In this document: one piece after another, positions 15,823-64,000 of the stretch
Layout of the letters: every line of letters starts with the position of its first letter
How positions within the stretch are numbered: position 1 is the stretch's first letter
Source of the DNA: Octopus bimaculoides
Taxonomy: Eukaryota
Direction: 5' to 3'
DNA: 64,000 nt
Assembly: GCF_001194135.2 (NCBI RefSeq)
Contig: NC_068983.1
Span: 108,577,808-108,641,807 of the forward strand
Program-made: the position numbers and the translations under genes
The notes under the pieces: model-generated
The model's database searches: none
Seen by the model: only the letters and a program-made list of their open reading frames with translations
What the model was told of the DNA's origin: nothing

Positions 15823-16142
15823 TAGGCATGTGGCTCACTTGTTATTGTATTTGACTCACGGTTGTAAGGTCATAAGTTGAATCCCTGGTGACTTGTGTTC
15901 TTGAGCAAGACACTTTATCTCACATTACTCCAGTCAACTCAGCTGGCAAAAAATGAGTGGTACCCTTATTTCAAAGAGCCAGCCTTGTCACATTCTGTTT
16001 CATGCTGAATCTCCCTGAGAAGTATGTTAAGGGTACATGTGTCTTTGGAGTGCTCAACCACTTGCACATTAATTTCGTGACCAGACTGTTCCATTGATTG
16101 GATCAACTGGATCCCTCATTGCCATAACCGACAGAGTGCCAG
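15823..16142 (+). mobile_element. tRNA-derived SINE, family D
   Basis: Decayed A/B-box head (GTGGCTCAC...AAGTTGAATCCC), then GTTCTTGAGCAAGACACTTTAT...CTCAGCTG shared with 16482-16810. Confidence 0.75.
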
Positions 16143-16481
16143 TTATATTGATAGTAGAAAGATACTTACATAGGCACATTCAACTGCACACACACCCACA
16201 AACAGAAATACATATATAGATACACATATATGCATATAAACATACATATCAGATAAAGGGGTGTATACATACACACAGACATATAATTATGGTTAATATA
16301 TATATATGTACTCATAGACATACATAGAGGTATATAGTACATATATAAGCATATGTGTATAAATACTGTGATGTAAACACCTCAATTAGACTGAATCTGC
16401 CAAAACATGATTATAGGAGCAGAGTTAATGATTCGTATATAACAATAAATAAGAAATGATGTCTAAGGTATATGCAAACAG

Positions 16482-16810
16482 AGAAGGTGCATGACTCAGT
16501 GGTTAGAGCATCAGACTCATAATCATAAGGTAATGAGTTTGATTCCCTGACTGGGCTTTGTGATATGTTCTTGAGCAAGACACTTTATTTTACATTGTTC
16601 CAGCTCACTCAGCTGTAGAAATGAGTTGTGAAGTCACTGGTGCCTTGCTATATCGGCCTTTGCCTTTCCCTTGGTGTGGACAGGGGAGGCTGGTATGAAT
16701 GGGTGACTATTGGTCTTCCATAAATAGCCTTTCCCAGACTTGTGCCTCAAAGGGGAACTTACTAGGTGTAATCTCATTGTCACTCATGACTGAAGGGGGT
16801 CTTAACCCTA
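16482..16810 (+). mobile_element. tRNA-derived SINE, family D-related with a different 3' part
   Basis: A box TGACTCAGTGGTTAGAGCATCAG, B box GAGTTTGATTCC, central GTTCTTGAGCAAGACACTTTAT. Confidence 0.8.
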
Positions 16811-17923: not shown

Positions 17924-18482
17924 TATTTGTTTTTGATGTCCAGATATAATAACAACAATTTTACATTAAACTGAAGGATTACTCAATACTTTACATATTC
18001 ATATATTATTGGACCATGTAACAATTCAAAACTTTTATGATTCAAAATTGATACCAACTGGCTAGATGGTGTATATTTTGAATCATAAAATTTATGTTTC
18101 CCCAACAAATTTTACTATTGTATTACATAAAATTAAAATTCAATAGTGAATATGGTCATTAAAACATTGAATGAGTTTTTAATAATAATTAATGCATTTA
18201 TTGTACGGTGTGTGCAAAATGTAATGTAAATTTTCCATAAAACATGTATCATTTTCTTGATATGAATAAGCTTGTACATCTAATCCTAGCTTCAAAAATC
18301 AGTAAGCTACAGATAATTAAGGAAAAAGTCTATTACTTTAAATATAGATGTGACATTTCAGCTAACAATGATATTAACATAGAATTATTGAATCATGTAG
18401 TGAAAAGAAAACTATAAAAGAAACCTGATAATCAAAATTAGAAACTCTAGTTTATTGAGAGTAAGAGAATAAGCTATAGGTA

Positions 18483-18950
18483 CATCATCATCATCGTTTA
18501 ACGTCCGCTTTCCATGCTAGCATGGGTTGGACGATTTGACTGAGGACTGGTGAAACCGGATGGCAACACCAGGCTCCAATCTAATTTGGCAGAGTTTCTA
18601 CAGCTGGATGCCCTTCCTAACGCCAACCACTCAGAGAGTGTAGTGGGTGCTTTTACGTGTCACCCGCACGAGAGCCAGTCAGGCGGTACTGGCAATGGCC
18701 ACGCTCAAAATGGTGTCTTTTATGTGCCACCCACACAAGAGCCAGTCCAGGGGCACTGGCAACGATCTCGCTCAAAAATCCTATGAAGGCCAGTCAGGCG
18801 GTATTGGCAATGGCCACGCTCAAAATGTTGCATCCCATGCACCACCCGCACAAGAGCCAGTCCAGGGGCACTGGCAACGATCTCACTTGGCTTGCCGGGT
18901 CTTCTCACGCACAGCACATTTCCAAAGGTCTCGGTCAGAAATCAGTAATC
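18483..18950 (-). mobile_element. Young 5'-truncated RTE LINE 3' end (3'UTR tandem units and (GAT)n tail)
   Basis: Reverse complement matches the 3' end of the RTE at 52000-52570. CpGs intact; (CAT)n at the left end. Confidence 0.9.
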
Positions 18951-31639: not shown

Positions 31640-33880
31640 TGGCTGCTTTCCTAAACCTGAAGAAAATCTATGCTCTATGGTCAGTGATGGAATGGTGATC
31701 ACAAAAACAGGTGTTGATGAATGGTTTGTGGAGATATGCAAGTTATGTGCAGAGATTCAATAAGTAATACGTAAGTTAGCAATAAGTTTCAATGAGGAAC
31801 TTAACAGTTGAGGCAGTTCTCAGTCCTATCTTTTTTGTTACCATTTTTAATGTCATAATATGGGGAAACCAGCTCTCTATGAGAACTTATATAAGGCAAA
31901 AGTCTAGTTTATAGAGTTGATTTTTGTTGAAGAATTAGAGAAGAGATTCTGATTGTGGAAGTTTAGCATCAACAGGCTTCAAATTAAATTCAGTAGAGAC
32001 AAAAATTCTTGTTAGCAGCAAAGTAGAAAAAGCTCTACTACCATTAGGGATGTGGTCCAGCTGAGTATGTAAAATGATTAGACAGGATCTTTGTACTAAA
32101 TGTAAATGAAAGATGCACAAGAAATGTAGTGAGATCTGAAGCAGACTGACAGGGAAAGAATGACAATATGTAGTACTGGGTTGGTACTGCTATTTTTTTT
32201 TAATTTTGGAATTTATTGCGCTTTTAAATTTTGGAATCTATTTTTTTCGAGAATACTATTTTTGAATCATTTTGGAATCATTTTTTTTTTTCCTAGCTAA
32301 TTTTAGTTAATTTTTGTTTATTTTCAGATCATTGAAATGGAAAGTTAAGTTAAGAAAAACGAGCATTTTCGATATCTCCTTTTTTTTTTTGCTTTTAATA
32401 AGTTCAAAAAGGGAAATTTTGACCTCAAAGATGCACTTCGTTCTGGCTGTCCAGTTGAGTTTGATGAAGAGCAATTAAACCAACTTTTGCACGAAAATTC
32501 TCGTCAAATGACAAAGGAACTGGCAGAGAAAATGGAATGCTCCCACACTGTTACAGAGAAGCATCACTTGATAGGAAAGGTTCAGAAGTATGAAGCATGG
32601 GTTCTGCATGTTTTAAGTGACAACAACAAAAATTATCGAGCCACAATCTCCGCTGGTTTGCTTGCTTGTCACCACTCAACTCATGGGCACAAGCAACAAT
32701 TTCTTTACCAAATCGCTACTGGCGAGGAAAAATGGTGCCTGTACATCAATATGAAGCAGCGTAAGGGATGGCTTAGCCCCGGTAAACAAGCAACATCGTG
32801 CATGAAACAAGATCTTCATCTGCGTAAAACGATGTTGTGCGTATGGTGGGACTGGGAAGGGATTATCCATTACAAACTGCTTGAGTAAAACCAACGTGGA
32901 ACTCTATTTTCAACAATTGGAATGACTAAATATGGCGATTCAAGAGAAAAGGCCTAATTGGTAGCATGGAGTTCTGCTGCACAACAACACCCACCCTCAT
33001 ATCACCAATATGACCAAGGAAGCCATTCAAACACATGGCTGGGAAGTGCTGCCACACCTGCCGTACTCTCCTGATTTGACACCAATGAATTTCGACCTCT
33101 TTCAATCTCTTTGAAATGCTATGCATGGAGTTTCATTTAATACTGATGCAGAATTGAGAGCTTGGTTGGATCGATTTTTTGAGTTGAAATCGGGTGATTT
33201 CTACCAACGAGGTATTGAAAATTTTGTTGAACTTTGAGAAGAAGTTATAAACAACAAGGATGAATACATTATTGATTAATTAGTTGTTATTTTTTATTAA
33301 ACCTTTTAAAAAAATTAAATTTAAAAAATCGTGGGAACTTAGTTGCCAACCCAATAAATACACTGGGATGGTAAATAACAGAAGTATCATATAATAAAGT
33401 ATTTCAAATACTTAGAAAGCACCATAGAAGGAGTTGGTAGATTCTATTATGTAGGTTACTTGATTGGAAGTGGAGACTGGTGTCTGGAATCATAGTAACC
33501 AGTAATAATGAAGTAAAAAGTTCAGTGTATTATAACTACCCTTTCTGACAATGAAGAGGATTCTCTCTTTGAATAAAGAAAATTGTACAGTATTTATGTA
33601 TACACTGTGATGTTTATTGTACTGAATGTAGGGGGTGTATGACGGTTAAAAACAAATGAAGGAACCACAAATGAGCAAGGAGAAAAACTGGGTATAAAAT
33701 GAACCAAACATAGCATGGAAGGAAGAAGATGCAGTTATATGTGATATATGATGTGAATGAAGGATAACAGTTGAATAAAAAAGAATGTATTAAGAGATTC
33801 AAATGGAATGGATATGTAAAAGAGGAATACTGAGAAACACATAGAAAGAAGCGACAAAAGTTGATTTTAAAAGATTGAAA
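31640..33880 (+). mobile_element. Old RTE LINE (RT to C-terminus), interrupted by a mariner
   Basis: Left part has remnants of (G)SVLSPILF, ELEKRF..W, TKILVSSK and CTKCK..HKKCS. It resumes after 33357 with remnants of the VVDSFxYLGD region, KFR..LP.L and EKLGIK...RR, collinear with the 50.4-52.6 kb RTE. Confidence 0.7.
32176..33354 (+). mobile_element. Mariner (Tc1/mariner, DD34D) element with pseudogenised transposase
   Basis: Motifs WVLHVL (WVPHEL), TGEEKW (TGDEKW), HLRKTMLCVWWD, LHNNTHPH (HDNAxPH), HLPYSPDLTPMN (YSPDLAPxD). Right TIR reverse complement TTGGGTTGGCAACTAAGTT; decayed left TIR CTGGGTTGG; TA on both flanks. The TIR resembles the mellifera subfamily (from memory). Confidence 0.95.
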
Positions 33881-39058: not shown

Positions 39059-40229
39059 TATGGCACAAGACACAGACAACGTATTACGTTATACTCTACA
39101 GTGTGTGGTAGCATGTGTGTATATGTATAAGTTGTCTAAAAGTCCACAAGTCAGGGAAAAGATGCACTCGTATAACTGTCATTAGAGTGGGTATCTTATC
39201 CAAAGTGTACAGTATTATAAATCCATCACAGCTGATATACATAAATACAGTTCCATAAGTGAGTGAAAGGTTGTGAGTTTCAAGAACTGCACTTAACTGA
39301 CTATATATATGTATATGTAACTGTGTCTCTCTGTGTGTGTACATTTAAGCAGATTCTCACATACCTAATGTACAAAACTTAATTCAATGAGCAAAAATTT
39401 TAATTCAAGTAAATCAAAATTACAATATGGTGTTGAAAAGCAAGGGAGACAACCCTAAAATGAACATTCAAGATTAACAGGTAGTGTTGTGGGGAGTGAG
39501 TCTGGTGTTTAGAAAGTACAATGACTACTCCAGACATGTTTTGATCTTGTTAGACCTCCTCAGTGAAATCTAGTCTTTCTACTATTCTTCAAATCCTAGA
39601 TGGTAGAGATATGATGTGAGTGAATTAGCATTGTGAAGCATATAACAACATAAAATGAATGACTAGTGGAAATCAGCCAGAAGATGCCTTTGTCTTTAAT
39701 TTAGTATCTTGTCTATTTAATCTCACCATTTATTTCCCTTATTATTAATGCATTATTACTTTTACTTCAAACACACCTCACCAGTCCATTTATGATTGAT
39801 ATAATTTTCTGAAGTTTTATGTACAATACATTAAAATTTCAATTAAGCCTATTCTGTTTTAATATTGAAGTTTACTTCTATTAATTCGGACTTAATTCTA
39901 AGTTAATAAAAAGTTGCAAGTTTTAGAAAACTACAATACTGGAATTTTTCAATGACTTTTGTTTGATATTAATAGTTTATACTATAATATTGGTCAGTTA
40001 TTGTGTTTCAATTTAGTTTTACATGTTTTATGTATACTGTCTCCTTGAATATATTATATGAAAACTGTTAGTCTTTTTTCATATGATTATCATTAATATT
40101 TCTAAATAAGAGCTATTACAATTTGCTGCTGCTGCTGCTCCTCCTCCTCCTCCTACTACTACTACTACTGGCTCTGCTGTGGCTGCTGCTGTTATTATTA
40201 GAGTGATAGTTAAAAAGATAAGTGAAGGG

Positions 40230-42083: not shown

Positions 42084-42288
42084 TCATCATCATCATCATC
42101 ATCATCATCGTCGTCGTTTAATGTCCGCTTTCCATGCTAGCATGGGTTGGACGATTTGACTGAGGACTGGTGAAACCGGATGGCAACACCAGGCTCCAAT
42201 CTAATTTGGCAGAGTTTCTACAGCTGGATGCCCTTCCTAACGCCAACCACTCAGAGAGTGTAGTGGGTGCTTTTACGTGTCACCCGCA

Positions 42289-42291
<3 letters not shown>
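42084..42291 (-). mobile_element. Young RTE 3' terminal fragment
   Basis: 42123-42291 is identical over 169 bp to 18503-18671; (CAT)n tail. Confidence 0.9.
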
Positions 42292-46252: not shown

Positions 46253-47350
46253 TATTAAAAATTTATCACCTTATTCTTTCTGATATTGTCAGTAGTCTGA
46301 ATTTTTTTTTTACCTTGATAAAAACAGAAAATATTTTTTTGAGACGATTATTTGTTAAGAATTATCTCTTTCAATGTCTTGATTCTGTTCTGTCTTAGAG
46401 AACCTTATAGTCTTGTTTCTTCTTTCAATTATTTTCAAAATATTTCAGTTTTATTCTGCTTAAAATATTTTCATTGATTTGAATAATGGATGAGAATATT
46501 GAACTAAGGGAAATAACTCAAGAAGACTAATGGGAAAAAAATAGGTAATTTAAGTAGATAGTGAGATATTGAAAGATGTATACAAAGCAGTCACGAAGAT
46601 TTTTACAAGTAGAAAAAGAGATATGAAGATTTTTGACTAATCTAATTAGCATAAGTTCTAAAAAATGAGGTAAGAAGAATAAGTGCATATAAATCATTCA
46701 TTTATCACCACCTATATGAATTGACTAAACTCTTGCAAATGGCTCACTCAAGTGATTTCCTGCTCATGTTTTTTGATAATGCAACTTATACCAGTCAAAG
46801 ATCTTTGGAAAATTTTTTCTACTAATCAACACAGGGCTGACAGAACTATGCTTTGCTAATGATGTCCAGTAAGGTGGAAATAAGCATATTGCTGTTACGT
46901 TGAGTGCTAATTAAATTGACATGAAAATTTAATTTTCAATGAAATTAATTCTTAATTTCTACAAATTATCTCCCGTTTTCTGTGAGAGGTGATAAAAATT
47001 GCATGTAGATTTTCGCTTCTGTTCCAATTATATTCCAATAAGAAATTTTTGCATACGTCATTAAGTACATCCCACCTACCTGAATAATCTCAATTCATGC
47101 TATAAATCCTCTTGGATTATTTACTCTTTGTACTTATGCAATTTATGCTACCCAAGCATTTTTCTAACTCTTTTTCTAGTTAGAACATCTCTGTCCACTG
47201 TTTCAAACAGGCTTCTGAGATTTAACAAGATTAAACGATGTTAAAACTATCACTTTGCCTCCTAACAGATTTTTCCATTTAAGCACATAAATTCAAACTT
47301 CTGCAAAATTAATTTTTAATTTCTTAAAGATCAAGAATTAATTTGATATA

Positions 47351-47435
47351 ACATATTCTAAAAAGGAAAGATACAAAGATTAGCATGGCTCCTGCACAAG
47401 CATGACATACAAATTTGTAAAGTTTTCATATTTTT
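47351..47435 (+). pseudogene. U6: U6 snRNA pseudogene, 5'-truncated
   Basis: ACATATTCTAAAAAGGAAAGATACAAAGATTAGCATGGCTCCTGCACAAGCATGACATACAAATTTGTAAAGTTTTCATATTTTT aligns with canonical U6 from about nt 18 to the 3' end. The ACAGAGA box is broken by a deletion and the 5' stem-loop is absent. Confidence 0.92.
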
Positions 47436-48075
47436 CATGATGCTTCAAGATGGTGTCCCAACAAGGTAGCAGTCCTCTTTTCTTTACAAGTTGCATATAT
47501 TGTGACTATATGTTTGTTTCCTTTCTCCAATTGATTAAAAAGAAATTTCAATCCAGAATATTTTGCATCAGAATTTTTTCCTTGTACATCACTACCTATC
47601 TATAATATGCATAATAAGACTGGATAAAGTAATTAACATGTTCCTCTATTATGGTAGCTTTTGTAGATGTTTCAAAAATGCCTACAGTTTTTTCTCTGTA
47701 TATTTTTTAGCTAAAATTTCATTAACCCTTTTACTGTAAAATTCAGTCATATCCACTAAAAATTTTATTACCCTTCACTATAGAAAGCAGTTTTATATCT
47801 CAATCTATCACCTGTGGAAGAATGTCATGCCTGAAACTACTTTTTGTCAAGTTTACTGAGGCAATGTGACTTGCAGAAAATACTGGTTCTATTTTTTGGC
47901 AGATGTTTGATATCATTAATGGAATAGCTATGAAATTTAATTTTGCATTAAAAGACTTAAGACCAACTTTGCATTTTATCTTAAAATAAGTACCAGAATA
48001 TATCCATTACCTATATTCTAACCACCAAACCATATTAGCCTTCTATCTAACAAATAAATCCTTAACATATGGATA

Positions 48076-50419: not shown

Positions 50420-52570
50420 GATAAATCAATTAAGGGTATGAAGACATGGAAAGCCCCTGGTCCATCAGGAATCACCATAGAGATGCTCAAAATATCTGGT
50501 GGTGTTGGCGATAGTCTAGTCACCCATATAGTCAATCAGGTGATACATGAAGGAGTCATACCCAATGGCTGGTGTAGCAGCACCATAGTCTGCTGCTACA
50601 AAAGTAAAGGTGATGCAGTAGATACAAATAATTAGAGAGGTATCAAGTTGTTGGATCAGGTAATGAAATTCATGGAGAGGGTCATAGTTTAGATGAGATG
50701 CAGTTTGGGTTTGTGCCAGGGAAAAGCACCATTGATGCTATATTTCTGGTAAGACAGCTGCAGGAGAAATACCTAGCCAAAGATAAACCTCTGTACCTGG
50801 CTTTTGTTGACATAGAGAAAACCTTTGACAGGGACCCTGATCCCATATATGGTGGTCAATGCAGAAACTAGGGATAGATGAGTGGTTGGTGAGAGCTGTA
50901 CAAGCCATGTACAGAGATGCTGTCAGTAAGGTGAGGGTTGGAAAAGCGTATAGTGAAGAATTCCAGGTAGGGGTCCACCAAGGATCAGTCCTCAGCCCCT
51001 TCTTATTCATCATAGTTTTCCAGGTAATAACAGAGGAATTCAAAACAGAATGTCCCTGGGAGCTTCTTTATGCTGATGACCTTACTCTAATACCCGAATG
51101 ACTATCAGAACTAGAGGAGAAATTTCAGGTGTGGAAACAAGGACTAGAATCGAAGGGCCGTAGAGTAAATCTAGCAAAAACTAAAGTCTTAATAAGTAGG
51201 AAGGCAGATAAATCACAAATCCTTTCAGTTAGATGGCCCTGCTCAATCTGTAGAAAAGGTATAGTTAGAAGCTCCTTAATATGTACCCAGAGTAAGCTAT
51301 GGACACAAAAGATGTGTAGCAATATCAAGGGATGGCTAACTAGGAAGATAGTTTTTGTGTGTGGCAAATGTTCAGGGGCAATAAATACTGAAAATATACA
51401 GAAAACAGCTTCTGTCACATGCTAGGAGGTAAAACTACAAGTAGTTGATAGCTTCCATTACCTAGGTGACCAAGTCAGTAGTGGGGGTGGATGCTCTGAA
51501 ATTGTAGCTGCTAGAATAAGAATAGTCTGGGTAAAGTTCAGAGAGCTCTTACCTCTGCTGATGATAAAGGGCCTCTCGCTCCGAGTAAAAGGTAGACTGT
51601 ATGACACATGTGTGTGAACAGCCATGCTTCATGGAGTGAAACATGGGCCATGACTGCTGAGGACATGCATACGCTTGCAAGAAATGAAGCTAGTATGCTT
51701 CGCTGGATGTGTAATGTCAGTGTACATACACGACAGAGTGTAAGCACCCTGAGAAAAAAGTTGGACATAAGAAGCATCAGATGTGGTGTGAAAGAGAGAC
51801 GACTGTGTTGGTATGGTCATGTGTTGCATATGAATGAGGACAGCTGTGTGAAAAAGTGTCACATCCTAGCAGTAGAGGGAACCTGTGAAAGCGATAGACC
51901 CAGGAAGACATGGGATGAGGTGGTGAAGCACGACCTTTGAACGTTGGGCCTCACAGAGGTGATGAGTGACTGAGACATTTGGAGATATGCTGTGCTTGAG
52001 AAAATCCGGCAAGCCAAATGAGACCGTAACCATGGCCTGTGCCAGTGCTGCATGACTGGCCCATTTGTGAGTACCCTTCAATCATTGGGCAATAAATTGA
52101 GCATGCAAGGACCGGTTGAATCAAGTGAAGTCATTTTTGTGGCCAATGCCAGTATTGCCTGACTGGCACCCATGACGGTGGCACATAAAAAGCACCATTC
52201 AAGTGTGGTCGTCACCAGTGCTGCCTGATTGGCTCCCATACCAGTGGCATGTAAAAAGCACCATTTGAGCATGGTTATTGCCAGTGCTGCCTGACTGGCT
52301 CCCATGCAGGTTGCACATAAAATGCACCATTCAAGTGTGGTCGATGTCAGTACCACCAGACTGACCCTTGTGCTGGTGGCACATAAAAAGCACCCACTGC
52401 ACTCTTGGAGCGGTTGGTGTTAGGAAGGGCATCCAGCTGTAGAAACTTTGCCAGATCAGATTGGAGCCTGGTACAGCCTTCTGGCTCGCCAGTCTTCAGT
52501 CAAACTGTCCAACCAATGCCAGCATGGAAAGTAAATGTTGAATGATGACGACGACGACGATGATGATGAT
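50420..52570 (+). mobile_element. RTE-clade LINE, 5'-truncated: RT pseudogene, 3'UTR and (GAT)n tail
   Basis: KAPGPSGITIEMLK, QFGFVPGKST, AFVDIEKTFD, GVHQGSVLSP, LLYADDL, VNLAKTK, RRLCWYGHV, RPRKTW with scattered stops and frameshifts; four 66-bp 3'UTR units; ends GATGACGACGACGACGATGATGATG. Confidence 0.97.
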
Positions 52571-57058: not shown

Positions 57059-57210
57059 GCTCCTTTTAGTTTACATCTACCAAATCAACTTTCAAGGCTT
57101 TGGTCAGCTCAAGGCTATAGTAGAAGGCACTCATTCTAGCTGCCACACAGTGGGACTGAACCTTGAATCATGTGGTTGGAAAGCATATTTCTTACCTCAC
57201 AACCATGCCT
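57059..57210 (-). mobile_element. SINE family A
   Basis: Reverse-complement match to 17447-17600. Confidence 0.85.
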
Positions 57211-57628: not shown

Positions 57629-57785
57629 AGGCTTCCTTCAGTTTCTGTCTACCAAATCTACTCACAAGCTTTTGGTCGGCCTGTAGCTATAGTAGAAGAC
57701 ACTTGCCCAACATGCCACACAGTGGGACTGAACCTGGAACCATGTTGTTGGTAAGCAAGCTGCTTACCACACAGCCACTCCTGCA
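57629..57785 (-). mobile_element. SINE family A
   Basis: Reverse-complement match to 48611-48735. Confidence 0.88.
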
Positions 57786-59119
57786 CCAATGTTAGTTAAT
57801 TTCTATTAAAAATATCGTTTTCTTGTAGACAATACGATGATTTATGTAAATAAATTTTATGTATTAATACTAATTTACTTTTATTTAGTATAATTGATTA
57901 AACTGACAATTACCAAAATTAATACACTGAATTTATACAAATCATATTCAGAAGATTCCATATTTTGAAATATATGGAGATTAAAATAGCACTGAAATCA
58001 TTCCTGTTGATACTGAGAGTAGGCATAACAATCTATCAATGCTTAACTGAAAGATTATCTTTCACTTTGCCCATTTTCATTGGCTTCTTAGACTCAAGCG
58101 TAATGTCTAACTGTACAGTTTTGATTATAGCTATTTTTGTAAGTTAGCCATAAAAATGCCTTTTATCAATGACTTAAAACCAAAATATCACCAGATGATG
58201 ACTGCAAAATATTATTGCTGCCAACAATTTATTTTGTGAATAGCACCAGGTGTTAATTAATAGTGTTCATCACAGAAACATTTTGATAAAAAAGATTAAT
58301 CAAATAATAAACCAATTATTCTTTAAGCTATTTTTTTGTTTTAGAATATTGAATAATATTTGTGCTTAAATGTGTGACAAGACATATAGTCTGGGTCACA
58401 TTGTTTTTTTAAAATGCTTTCAGTTACATATGAAATAATAGCTGTCGTTGTAAAGAAATTCATGATTTGTTGGGTAACTTAGCCAGGAGAATTAATATTA
58501 TTACTGTAGTGCTCGCTACAATTAAGGGTAAATCTTGAGATAATTCTTCATTTCATATACATTATTTCACATTAAATTACATATAGTTCTTTCACACAAT
58601 TATTAGTATTTGTGAGAAGTATGATACAACATGTGGAAAATGAGTTGAAAGGACAGGAAACTGAAGAAATAGTAAACTGAGTATAATACCTGAATAATAA
58701 TGAAAGACATTGCAAACATGTTGATTGCAAATGATTTAATGTATGTATTGTGTGTAGTGTTCAGTACTGAATGAAATGGGTAGACTCTGCTTGTGTTGAT
58801 ATTTGATGCAAATAGATTACGTTTTGAGTGATTGTCTTTAATCTGTTTGTGAATGTTAAAACAAAGTACCACTCCAGGGTGGTGAACCAGTGAAATTGTT
58901 AGAGCATCAGACAAGGTGATTTGTTTGTTTTGGCTATTTGTATTCTGAGTTCTTATGTGATAGACTCAATCTACTGCCCCAAAAATCTCTCAAATGTCAT
59001 CATTTCTAAAAATAAACTTGGCATCATTTCTAAAAATAGCCAAACACCTACTGCTGCTGTCCAAAGGAATAGGTATAAAAGACAAAAGAACAGCCAGTCT
59101 GTTACAGTACATCTGTCAG

Positions 59120-62200: not shown

Positions 62201-62519
62201 ATGAAACCTTTGAGGTAGATTGACATGTTTCAAACATATTACATGATAGTGATCTAGTTACAACAATCTGGAACATGATGGTCTAAACTAATAAAGAGAT
62301 AAGGAAAATGTCTAAATATAATTATTGAAGCCAAGCATGAATATCTAAGTACTTTGAATAAAATATTGTCAAGAAGGAAATTGAGAAACTATCAAAAGGG
62401 ATTGAAATGGAAATAAGTAGGACAAGGAATAAGAAATTTAAAAAACAGTACCAATAACAGTTAGTAATCTATGTACGTTAAAGAACAAAATGAAAAAAAT
62501 ACATATCAGGACTTATAAC

Positions 62520-63106
62520 TTAGAAAATTACTAGTTGTAAATCTCACAACGAGAGATATTCAGCAACAGTACTTTGGAGTAAAGATTGTTTGCCAACATA
62601 ACATGGCAGTCCTGGTTTATGACGAATGTTGCTGTAATTTAGCCCCAGGAAACATCGTTTTCAGCTGGCTATATGACACGATCTGAGTCCTTATATTTTT
62701 GAACAAGGAAATTTAGTACCCCACTGTCAGCTCAAAACAATATCTGTGTATCGCGATTTCTGGGTTATTTCCCTTCATCAGCACAGAATAATTGTTCAGC
62801 TAGAGGTGGCACTGCCAAATTCCCGTTCGAAATATATAGTTTTTCAATGTGACAACTAGTCACTTATCTATAAATTAGAAAATTACTATTTGTAAATCTC
62901 ACAACCAGAGATATTCAGCAACAGTACTTTGGAGTAAAGATTGTTTGCCAACATAACATGGCAGTCCTAGATTCCCTTGTTCAAAAATATAAGGACACAG
63001 ATCGTGTCATATAGCCAGCTGGAGACGATGTCTCCTGGGGCTAAATTACAGCAACATTCGTCCTAAACCAGGACTGCCACTTTATGTTGGCAAACAATCT
63101 TTACTC
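62520..63106 (-). mobile_element. Non-autonomous Penelope-like (PLE)/retrozyme-like insertion: partial tandem pLTR plus inverted 5' segment
   Basis: 13-bp TSD CAGGACTTATAAC (62507-62519, 63107-63119); 94-bp direct repeat 62520-62613 = 62875-62968 (period 355); 62971-63108 is the inverted copy of 62575-62712; internal hammerhead. Confidence 0.85.
62743..62787 (-). ncRNA. Minimal type I hammerhead ribozyme
   Basis: Minus strand TCTGTG-CTGATGA-A-GGG(AAATAA)CCC-A-GAAA-TCGCGA-TA-CACAGA: intact CUGAUGA/GAAA core, 6-bp stem I, palindromic stem III ATCGCGAT, AUA triplet. Predicted cleavage between 62749 and 62748. Confidence 0.85.
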
Positions 63107-64000
63107 CAGGACTTATAACGTTACAAACGGTTTTAAAAATATGTCTCTCCTGACTTAAGGAACTTTTATTTCAACAGTATTATTTACACAACACATACTC
63201 CATATAATCATCAGTAAATGTAATAATGTGACTCAAAAAGTGCAATCTATCATCTGATAGAATAGCACAACCACACAGTACATAGTCTCACATCCACCCC
63301 TACAACAAAATAACATAGCAAACACCCTTATATAATCATTTGTGAATGTTATAATACATCCCTCATATCAACAATTCACATACGACACATTCTACATGAT
63401 GCTTAGTTGAAATACTAAATACCAACACAAGACACAACAAAACAATCTCTGGAATAAAGCAAAACATGATTCATGTAAACTCTTTTATAAAAGTGGCATT
63501 TTGGTAATCTAATTGATAAATTAGCTTAGATATATGCAGTGGCAAAGAGACTCAAAAGTAGTGTTGCTGAATAATTTAATAAAATAAGGAAGACTAGATA
63601 ATAAGAGGGTTTTAAATAATTTTTCATGCATCATGTGTTTGATGAATATGAAGTGAGATAATCAGCTGACTTTATTGAAAAGACTTTGTCTTGTGTTCTT
63701 GTGTTCTAGCTAATTTTCTGTAATTAGATGGGGACAACTATGAAGAATTTAGAGTAGCCATTGCTTTGCTCATGAGGTCTAATATGACAACACCATGCAT
63801 ATAGTTGTTATTTAGGCACTAACTTCCTTGAATGTGAAAACTCATTTTCTGTCAGATTTTTAACTACATGAAATATCTGTTTCCTTTGAGAATAACTAAA
63901 AATTGCTATTCAGATTTTGTTTTCCTTCTCCAACAAATAGGCAAATCTAATTTATCATTTTGTTTTTTTTTGTGAATGCAATCACTATCATATTGAATTA

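Follow-up and report, generated by a model that had tools for sequence, protein, structure and literature searches.

The question raised by this locus is what kind of element was inserted there, and how it was copied into the genome. The locus lies in a stretch of 64,000 nt of Octopus bimaculoides contig NC_068983.1 (referred to below as the window, from whose position 1 all coordinates are counted unless another sequence is named), where 587 bp (62520-63106) are held between two exact copies of a 13-nt repeat. A first-pass annotation, made from the letters of the sequence, had described the insert as a hammerhead-bearing element of Penelope-like or retrozyme-like type, with a repeat unit of 355 bp. 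Having analyzed its architecture, its hammerhead motif and its similarity to known systems, we consider it probable that an octopus non-LTR (long terminal repeat) retrozyme gave rise to the insert as a dispersed and non-coding daughter copy, twin-primed from an RNA longer than one unit, probably by the enzymes of a Penelope-like element (PLE).

Architecture of the insert

The insert is bracketed by a target-site duplication (TSD), CAGGACTTATAAC, which occurs as an exact 13-mer at 62507-62519 on the left and at 63107-63119 on the right (no strand is assigned to either copy), precisely as the first-pass annotation had it. The presumed empty site would read ATACATAT-CAGGACTTATAAC-GTTACAAACGG, with a single 13-mer. 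As background, the 64-kb window contains ~4 isolated exact 13-mer direct repeats that are not of low complexity and are spaced 300-1000 nt apart. From this background we estimate a probability of ~1e-6 for a 13-mer that brackets an independent composite repeat with nucleotide precision. Given how few isolated 13-mer repeats there are in the window, the bracketing of the composite repeat by the TSD is not due to chance.

Self-comparison resolved the insert into three segments. The first is a full unit of 355 bp (62520-62874, sense on the minus strand), which holds the only hammerhead of the insert. It is joined in direct tandem to a partial second unit (62875-62968, extendable to 62973, sense also on the minus strand) that is 97.9% identical to it, with 2 mismatches within the first 94 nt. 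This second segment equals plus-strand positions 1 to ~97 of the unit and is, in the sense orientation, an upstream, 5'-truncated copy. Together, the two make up 1.26-1.28 units of 355 bp, in keeping with the previously annotated figure of about 1.26 tandem copies. The third segment is an inverted copy of 145 nt (62964-63108, sense on the plus strand), which is the reverse complement of 62575-62719 (unit positions 56-200), is 93% identical to it (10 mismatches), and stands head-to-head with the main body. It lacks a hammerhead. An inverted 5' segment had been annotated with a length of 138 bp; the segment is indeed there, but its length had to be revised, the difference corresponding to the microhomology overlap at both of its ends.

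Such microhomologies are present at all three junctions of the insert. At the left end, the 3' part of the TSD (ACTTAT..AA) resembles 62862-62874, ACTTATCTATAAA, which is the unit sequence expected ahead of position 1 in a tandem. At the head-to-head junction, the direct partial copy and the inverted copy overlap by 5-10 nt (62964-62973) around a CTAG palindrome that is evident from the sequence (62967-62970, no strand). At the right end, the last 2 nt of the inverted copy (CA) overlap the right copy of the TSD.

The unit has a GC content of 37.5% and is non-coding. The longest stop-free stretch in any frame of the insert is 60 codons and the longest start-to-stop open reading frame (ORF) encodes 37 aa, which bears out the annotation of an insert with no substantial ORF. 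Like the animal non-LTR retrozymes, the 355-bp unit is free of LTRs, of a primer-binding site and of a polypurine tract. There is no tRNA-like part in the unit, and the 3' end of the insert (62520) bears neither poly(A) nor a simple-repeat tail. A comparison of the copies for an A-to-G bias, as a trace of RNA editing, gave 3 A>G and 3 T>C differences and hence no strand bias.

Three other candidates were rejected. An assembly artifact or collapse is ruled out, as no N occurs in this stretch and its repeated segments, three in number, are 2-7% different from each other. A tRNA-derived short interspersed element (SINE) is ruled out by the lack of a tRNA-like part, and a DNA transposon with terminal inverted repeats, or a miniature inverted-repeat transposable element, is ruled out by the position of the left inverted arm, which begins 55 nt inside the element, and by termini that are not inverted repeats.

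The hammerhead motif

Inspection of the core and helices identified a type I hammerhead with an extended helix I at 62737-62795, on the minus strand. Read from 62795 to 62737, it is ACAAU-UAU-UCUGUG-CUGAUGA-A-GGG-AAAUAA-CCC-A-GAA-A-UCGCGA-U-A|CACAGA-U-AUUGU. Helix I comprises 6 bp (62787-62782 with 62748-62743) and leads, by way of a UAU/U internal loop, to a closing stem of 5 bp (62795-62791 with 62741-62737). The CUGAUGA core is found at 62781-62775. Helix II consists of three G-C pairs (GGG/CCC), or four positions if the closing A·A at 10.1/11.1 (62774/62761) is counted, and carries the sequence AAAUAA as loop 2. The following GAA-A lies at 62760-62757, with GAA at 62760-62758 and A15.1 at 62757, and helix III is formed by an A-U and a U-A pair around the palindromic tetraloop CGCG, within the 8-nt palindrome AUCGCGAU (62757-62750). 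U16.1 is at 62750 and A17 at 62749, and cleavage is predicted after AUA, at 62749|62748, which is the position (A17 | C) that had been named as the expected cut.

All positions of the conserved core are present (C3-U4-G5-A6-N7-G8-A9, G12-A13-A14, A15.1-U16.1 and an H17 that is not G), and three helices surround it, of which helix I is open-ended, as in type I hammerheads. The earlier description of a single minus-strand hammerhead with an intact core and a palindromic stem III therefore stands. This copy has one hammerhead, inside the full unit, and it sits on the strand expected to be sense from the rule of the inverted 5' segment. No PLE-type minimal hammerhead was found elsewhere in the window with a strict descriptor.

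How likely is it that such a motif arises by accident? A descriptor that follows the type I design published for metazoans, relaxed so that helix II may hold one mismatch, matched nothing in the real window but the motif at 62737-62795. Windows simulated with a first-order Markov model gave one match in 1500 (and 0 in 1500 with helix I of at least 6 bp); the chance expectation for a descriptor that accepts the motif is about 7e-4 per window. The descriptor was, however, written after the motif had been seen, and we therefore also ran an independent test, in the form of a covariance model (R1) with a textbook structure, made from an alignment of four retrozyme hammerheads whose cleavage has been assayed, namely coral Amil224, mussel Mg353, and axolotl Ax353 and Ax330 (all listed by Cervera & de la Pena, 2020, in Supplementary Table 2; PMC7229834). 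When the window was searched with filters off, R1 placed the motif second, with 17.8 bits and an E-value of about 0.009 that is rough, given a model of four sequences and a marginal match; the next match in the window had 12.6 bits. We conclude that the hammerhead motif is not a chance occurrence.

A broader version of the doubt is that the likeness to a hammerhead is coincidental or the motif long dead, and that the insert is just a short retroposon of the ordinary sort, or the outcome of duplication and inversion at the DNA level, and has nothing to do with ribozyme biology. Besides the post hoc descriptor and the rough E-value, several observations speak for this and weigh against our interpretation. 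The Rfam hammerhead models (RF00163, RF02275 and related models) had no match in the whole window at gathering score, nor did the Rfam hammerheads match at E<=10 in a 131-nt search of the motif region, whereas another hammerhead-like site at 39.5 kb, which served as a control, received a weak HH9 match of 16.2 bits. The copy is single and has a single motif, and the rate of ~7e-4 per 64 kb extrapolates to a few tens of chance matches in a genome of 2-3 Gb. Finally, the conserved G10.1-C11.1 pair is replaced by A·A, which leaves helix II with three G-C pairs.

Against these stand the recovery of the motif by the independent model R1, and its location, which lowers the chance rate further: it falls on the strand predicted to be sense and inside an insert of 587 bp that takes up about 1% of the window. 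The palindromic helix III, the 6-bp helix I with its internal loop and closing stem, and the A-rich loop 2 of 6 nt all fit the metazoan type I design. The exact TSD with its microhomologies argues for retroposition over a rearrangement of DNA. The A·A mismatch, which the first-pass annotation had entered as a caveat, is present as described, but as a caveat it appears weaker than feared. G-C at 10.1-11.1 is conserved in canonical hammerheads, yet HHR_Amex2 of axolotl (~60,000 copies), whose helix II has U·U at its base, is still able to cleave, with 22% of the monomer cut in one hour and the dimer cutting much better. If the A·A were a feature of the whole family, it would make this the second natural example of a weakened, dimer-only hammerhead after the axolotl U·U. 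All told, we regard an explanation devoid of ribozyme biology as very improbable.

The predicted folds are those expected of a retrozyme. Two hammerhead segments cofold at -39.3 kcal/mol, compared with 2 x -15.2 for the monomers, and form a dimer with an intermolecular helix III of 8 bp and both cores open. Likewise, the unconstrained minimum free energy (MFE) structure of a synthetic two-unit transcript is a double hammerhead, which again argues against a coincidental motif. A circular monomer of 355 nt, permuted to the cut site, has an MFE of -87.6 kcal/mol (z = -3.35 relative to dinucleotide shuffles), an unusual stability, and the pair probabilities of helices I and II in the predicted folds are 0.84-0.99. 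Animal retrozyme circles are highly self-paired, with the ribozyme left free to fold (PMC7229834), and the octopus circle is, in prediction, likewise highly self-paired with a hammerhead that is able to fold.

Class and origin of the element

Non-LTR retrozymes of animals were described in 2020 in coral, mussel and axolotl, and were noted in many invertebrate phyla (PMC7229834). They are 170-400 nt long (up to ~970), low in GC and non-coding, with TSDs of >4 bp when present, and the units of the mussel measure 350-390 bp (PMC7229834). The octopus unit resembles them in several respects. Its 355 nt compare with the 353 nt of Mg353 from Mytilus galloprovincialis and of Rtz_353 from axolotl, which are equally non-coding, and its GC content with the 36.8% of the mussel retrozyme. 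The hammerheads of mussel and octopus both have a 6-bp helix I, a helix II of four positions and a 2-bp helix III with a palindromic, CG-rich tetraloop, the helix III region reading GAAACGCGCGUC in the mussel and GAAAUCGCGAUA in the octopus. Axolotl Amex2 and the octopus element share a non-Watson-Crick pair at the base of helix II (U·U and A·A, respectively), and a strongly self-paired predicted circle with a hammerhead free to fold, as well as a TSD of >4 bp, are common to the animal retrozymes and the octopus element. The annotation of a retrozyme-like class is thus supported by unit length, GC content, lack of an ORF and the self-paired predicted circle.

There are also differences. Outside the core, the retrozymes of mussel, coral and axolotl have no similarity to the octopus unit that exceeds shuffled controls. 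Retrozyme arrays consist of multiple units with a hammerhead in each, whereas the octopus locus has 1.27 units and one hammerhead, and in this it corresponds to the 'monomer derivatives' of retrozymes. The octopus insert also has a head-to-head inverted segment, and the retrozyme literature that we examined describes neither such copies nor junction microhomologies. Type I hammerheads are also carried by satellite 2 of newts and salamanders and by Sm-alpha of Schistosoma, non-coding repeats that are likewise short and either dispersed or tandem, and that share with the octopus element a weak helix III with a palindromic loop, so that two copies act as a double hammerhead. The octopus element differs from both in sequence, in host and in the A·A at 10.1/11.1. 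Its loop 2, AAAUAA, has AAAUA in common with the loop CAAAUA of the Schistosoma-derived N79, and in both the 6-bp helix I is followed by an internal loop containing UA, which amounts to no more than a resemblance. We take the octopus element to be a probable new member of the known class of animal retrozymes and not a new kind of element.

The arrangement of the copies, on the other hand, is that of a PLE. Insertions of PLEs comprise a partial tandem and, next to it, an inverted 5' copy overlapping the direct copy, with TSDs of 8-10 bp in the rotifer examples; in Pen2a_Av of Adineta vaga, the inverted and direct pseudo-LTRs (pLTRs) share an overlap of 15 bp, and the TSD measures 9 bp (PMC3846280). 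Palindromes and overlaps occur at the inverted junctions of PLEs. The octopus insert shares with the endonuclease-containing (EN+) PLEs (Penelope/Poseidon as well as Neptune and Nematis) the partial tandem pLTR, the overlapping, 5'-truncated inverted copy, the head-to-head orientation, a short TSD (albeit one of 13 bp, as opposed to 8-10 bp in rotifers) and a hammerhead on the sense strand of the repeat. The annotation had taken a partial tandem with an inverted 5' segment as a signature of PLEs, and published PLE insertions agree with this. Unlike EN+ PLEs, the octopus insert lacks an ORF for a reverse transcriptase (RT) with a GIY-YIG endonuclease (RT/GIY-YIG) and so is not autonomous; it can be at most a non-autonomous dependant of a PLE.

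In canonical metazoan type I hammerheads, helix I measures 6 bp, helix II 4 bp and helix III 1-2 bp, the last with a palindromic loop of 2-4 nt, whereas the minimal hammerheads (min-HHRs) of PLEs lack helix III and have a helix II of 7-8 bp and a helix I of 4-5 bp (Cervera & de la Pena, 2014). With its helix III, 6-bp helix I and 4-position helix II, the octopus motif has the canonical type I shape of retrozymes and is not a metazoan PLE min-HHR, and the earlier classification of the motif as a PLE minimal hammerhead has to be dropped. This bears on the suggestion that the insert is an autonomous PLE so severely 5'-truncated that only pLTR sequence is left, with no separate non-autonomous retrozyme involved. 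The insertion signature would be the same, 5' truncation affects most PLE insertions, which retain nothing but terminal repeat sequence, and PLE pLTRs do carry hammerheads. However, the hammerhead has the canonical retrozyme shape and not that of the min-HHRs reported for metazoan PLE pLTRs, and the direct segment of the insert repeats with a period of 355 bp and no ORF sequence in between, an arrangement for which a truncated copy of a ~3-kb PLE tandem would need a 355-nt multimer or circle as its template. We consider this explanation quite unlikely.

If the insert is instead a retrozyme copy, its origin can be pictured as follows. According to the published retrozyme model, a master locus with at least two tandem units would be transcribed, and adjacent hammerheads would pair via the palindromic helix III AUCGCGAU to give a double hammerhead, in which each cuts after A17; circularization could follow. 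The copy at 62520-63106 would have arisen by target-primed reverse transcription at a 13-bp staggered break. The plus-strand 3'-OH at 62519 may have annealed, through the ACTTAT..AA microhomology, to the inside of a longer-than-unit sense RNA (multimer or circle), and the first cDNA, primed there, would have copied 1.27 units (62520-62973). The opposite 3'-OH, helped by the CA/TG microhomology at 63107-63108, would have primed a second cDNA on the same kind of RNA, from 63106 back to 62964. The two cDNAs would then have been joined head-to-head at the CTAG microhomology, and filling in of the stagger would have produced the TSD. The enzyme would most likely have been the RT/GIY-YIG endonuclease of an autonomous PLE.

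Several features of the insert agree with this scheme. If the hammerhead strand is taken as sense, the plus strand of 62520-62973 and the minus strand of 63106-62964 are both of cDNA polarity, and each of these segments begins beside one copy of the 13-mer, as twin priming predicts. A direct segment of 454 nt with a period of 355 nt implies a template longer than one unit, and since the left primer also resembles the template beyond the start, the RNA was apparently entered internally, which points to a multimer or a circle. As 229 nt separate the start of the cDNA from the predicted ribozyme cut site, what was copied was not a hammerhead-cut linear monomer from its own 3' end. With its single hammerhead, the copy could be cut once at most and could not release a monomer, which makes it a dead end.

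Could another RT have done the same? Long interspersed elements (LINEs) of the RTE, CR1 or a similar clade might have copied the same hammerhead repeat RNA, the inverted 5' segment then being the product of LINE-type twin priming. For LINE-mediated insertions, twin priming is classical, as are junctions with microhomology and TSDs of 10-20 bp, and head-to-head inversion by twin priming is a hallmark of LINEs too. The twin priming, junction microhomologies and 13-bp TSD of the insert fit that pattern, and the assignment of the RT is therefore not proven. LINE RT remnants are also abundant in the window (50.7-52.5 kb), where no PLE ORF was seen, and for retrozymes the question of 'LINEs or PLEs' was left undecided by Cervera & de la Pena (2020, PMC7229834). 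What makes a LINE the less attractive choice is the bare 3' end of the insert at 62520, which has no poly(A) or simple-repeat tail, and the combination of a partial tandem with an overlapping head-to-head inverted copy, which is typical of PLEs. Nor is the unit similar to the LINE fragments in the window. In vertebrates, moreover, retrozymes and PLEs have been reported to co-occur and to share pLTR homology; retrozymes have been proposed and argued to be PLE-dependent, and a 2026 preprint, confined to vertebrate data, argues that retrozymes derive from PLEs and states that their life cycle lacks empirical evidence. Copying by a LINE is, in our view, unlikely.

The search for relatives and partners of the element, and two features of the insert, add to the evidence that tells against a PLE-dependent octopus retrozyme. 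The window contains one copy of the unit, apart from a 24-nt inverted fragment. The stop-free translations of the unit, concatenated to 353 aa, had no relative among 5.8 billion proteins. A degenerate hammerhead pattern and a 24-mer common to the three segments each had 0 matches in JGI metagenomes, and the degenerate hammerhead pattern had 0 matches in IMG/VR viral contigs. No copy of the unit is present in an Octopus vulgaris locus of 20.9 kb (L001, OX597814.1) that was reached via a LINE protein. As for a partner, no PLE-type RT/GIY-YIG ORF was found among window ORFs of at least 90 aa, and a pseudo-consensus PLE RT/GIY-YIG bait retrieved 6088 PLE proteins (with E-values down to 1e-147), none of which was labelled octopus among the 120 matches listed. 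Within the insert, the 30-40 bp tail of PLEs, an optional feature, is absent, both ends adjoining the TSD directly, and the inverted copy has diverged from the unit by 6.9% and the tandem copy by 2.1%, a difference that is not significant (p = 0.13).

The 24-nt fragment (63550-63573, ACTCAAAAGTAGTGTTGCTGAATA) matches unit positions 38-61, taken as their reverse complement, with 92% identity and a local alignment score of 38 compared with 23 +/- 2.5 for shuffles, and its surroundings do not align. It may be what is left of an older, related copy, or else a short box that has been conserved.

Animal retrozymes yield some of the most abundant small circular RNAs known, and their return to DNA has so far been deduced from co-occurrence with PLEs and from sequence similarity, mostly in vertebrates. 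A clean single insertion such as this one would be a record of how a ribozyme RNA was copied, with target priming at both ends, a template longer than the unit and a start away from the cut. We tentatively suggest that the element is the first described cephalopod retrozyme, and that its twin-primed copy provides insertion-site evidence for a PLE-type RT acting on circular or multimeric ribozyme RNA, a step that has only been hypothesised for animal retrozymes; we hold this to be possible but somewhat doubtful. With the same reserve, the cDNA start 229 nt from the cut may mean that microhomology allows priming to take place anywhere along the circle. Should the family turn out to be abundant in octopus, it would bring cephalopods into the range of retrozymes and offer a tractable case for studying PLE dependence and circle formation. 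Taken by itself, the element is a repeat copy of an ordinary kind that is probably dead and does not evidently affect its host.

Other elements in octopus DNA

A second, different type I hammerhead-like motif lies at 39527-39569 on the minus strand, AUUUCA-CUGAGGA-GGUC-UAACAA-GAUC-AAAA-CAUGUC|UGGAGU. It scored 38.6 bits with R1 (E 7e-9) and closely resembles axolotl Ax330. The motif is solitary, with no tandem or inverted repeat around it, and it is probably inactive, judging by the A that takes the place of G12 (GAAA -> AAAA).

The O. vulgaris locus contains, at its positions 15896-16377, two hammerhead-like motifs on opposite strands (15969-16015 on the minus strand, 14.0 bits with R1; 16260-16306 on the plus strand, 16.3 bits). 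They lie in inverted arms that are ~80% complementary, and read outwards in a head-to-head arrangement. In the right arm, helix III consists of the palindrome AUCACGUGAU; in the left arm it is degenerate (AUGACAUGAU). The pair represents another octopus hammerhead element with a PLE-like inverted arrangement, whose sequence is unrelated to the 355-bp unit. With two further hammerhead-type elements in 85 kb of octopus DNA (the window and the O. vulgaris locus), such elements seem to be common in octopus. The giant squid genome paper lists 235 Rfam Hammerhead_1 matches and reports Penelope elements. In the literature searched, we found no report of retrozymes or of analyzed hammerhead repeats in cephalopods.

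The LINE remnants at 50692-52530 consist of RT- and PHD-type ORF fragments that are 72-77% identical to proteins of O. bimaculoides and O. vulgaris, which bears out an octopus as the host; at the DNA level, they are 77-86% identical to two places in the O. vulgaris locus. An interspersed repeat of ~190-290 bp occurs twice in the window (18481-18772 and 42101-42291) and is 81-90% identical to three places in the same O. vulgaris locus; it is probably an abundant octopus SINE. For the predicted protein of the ORF at 58603-58914, no record was found.

The window contains 1291 N in several gaps (e.g. at 24.8, 28.2, 53.5 and 56.0 kb), which lie beside long TA/CA/GA microsatellites, and it looks like the product of a scaffolded short-read assembly. 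Complex tandem and inverted insertions of the PLE type assemble poorly in short-read data.

Further exact direct repeats, of 13-23 nt at a spacing of 570-670 nt, were noted in the window at 57114-57163 and 57686-57735, and at 15896-15918 and 16566-16588, and may mark other repeat copies or TSD-like structures. A match to U6 small nuclear RNA at 47337-47436 on the plus strand (59.3 bits, above gathering score) has a degraded 5' stem and a GC content of 27%, and is probably a U6 pseudogene or a U6-derived retrocopy. Lastly, a fragment of a mariner-type transposase (Pfam Transposase_1, E 2.6e-13) is located at 32487-32888 on the plus strand.

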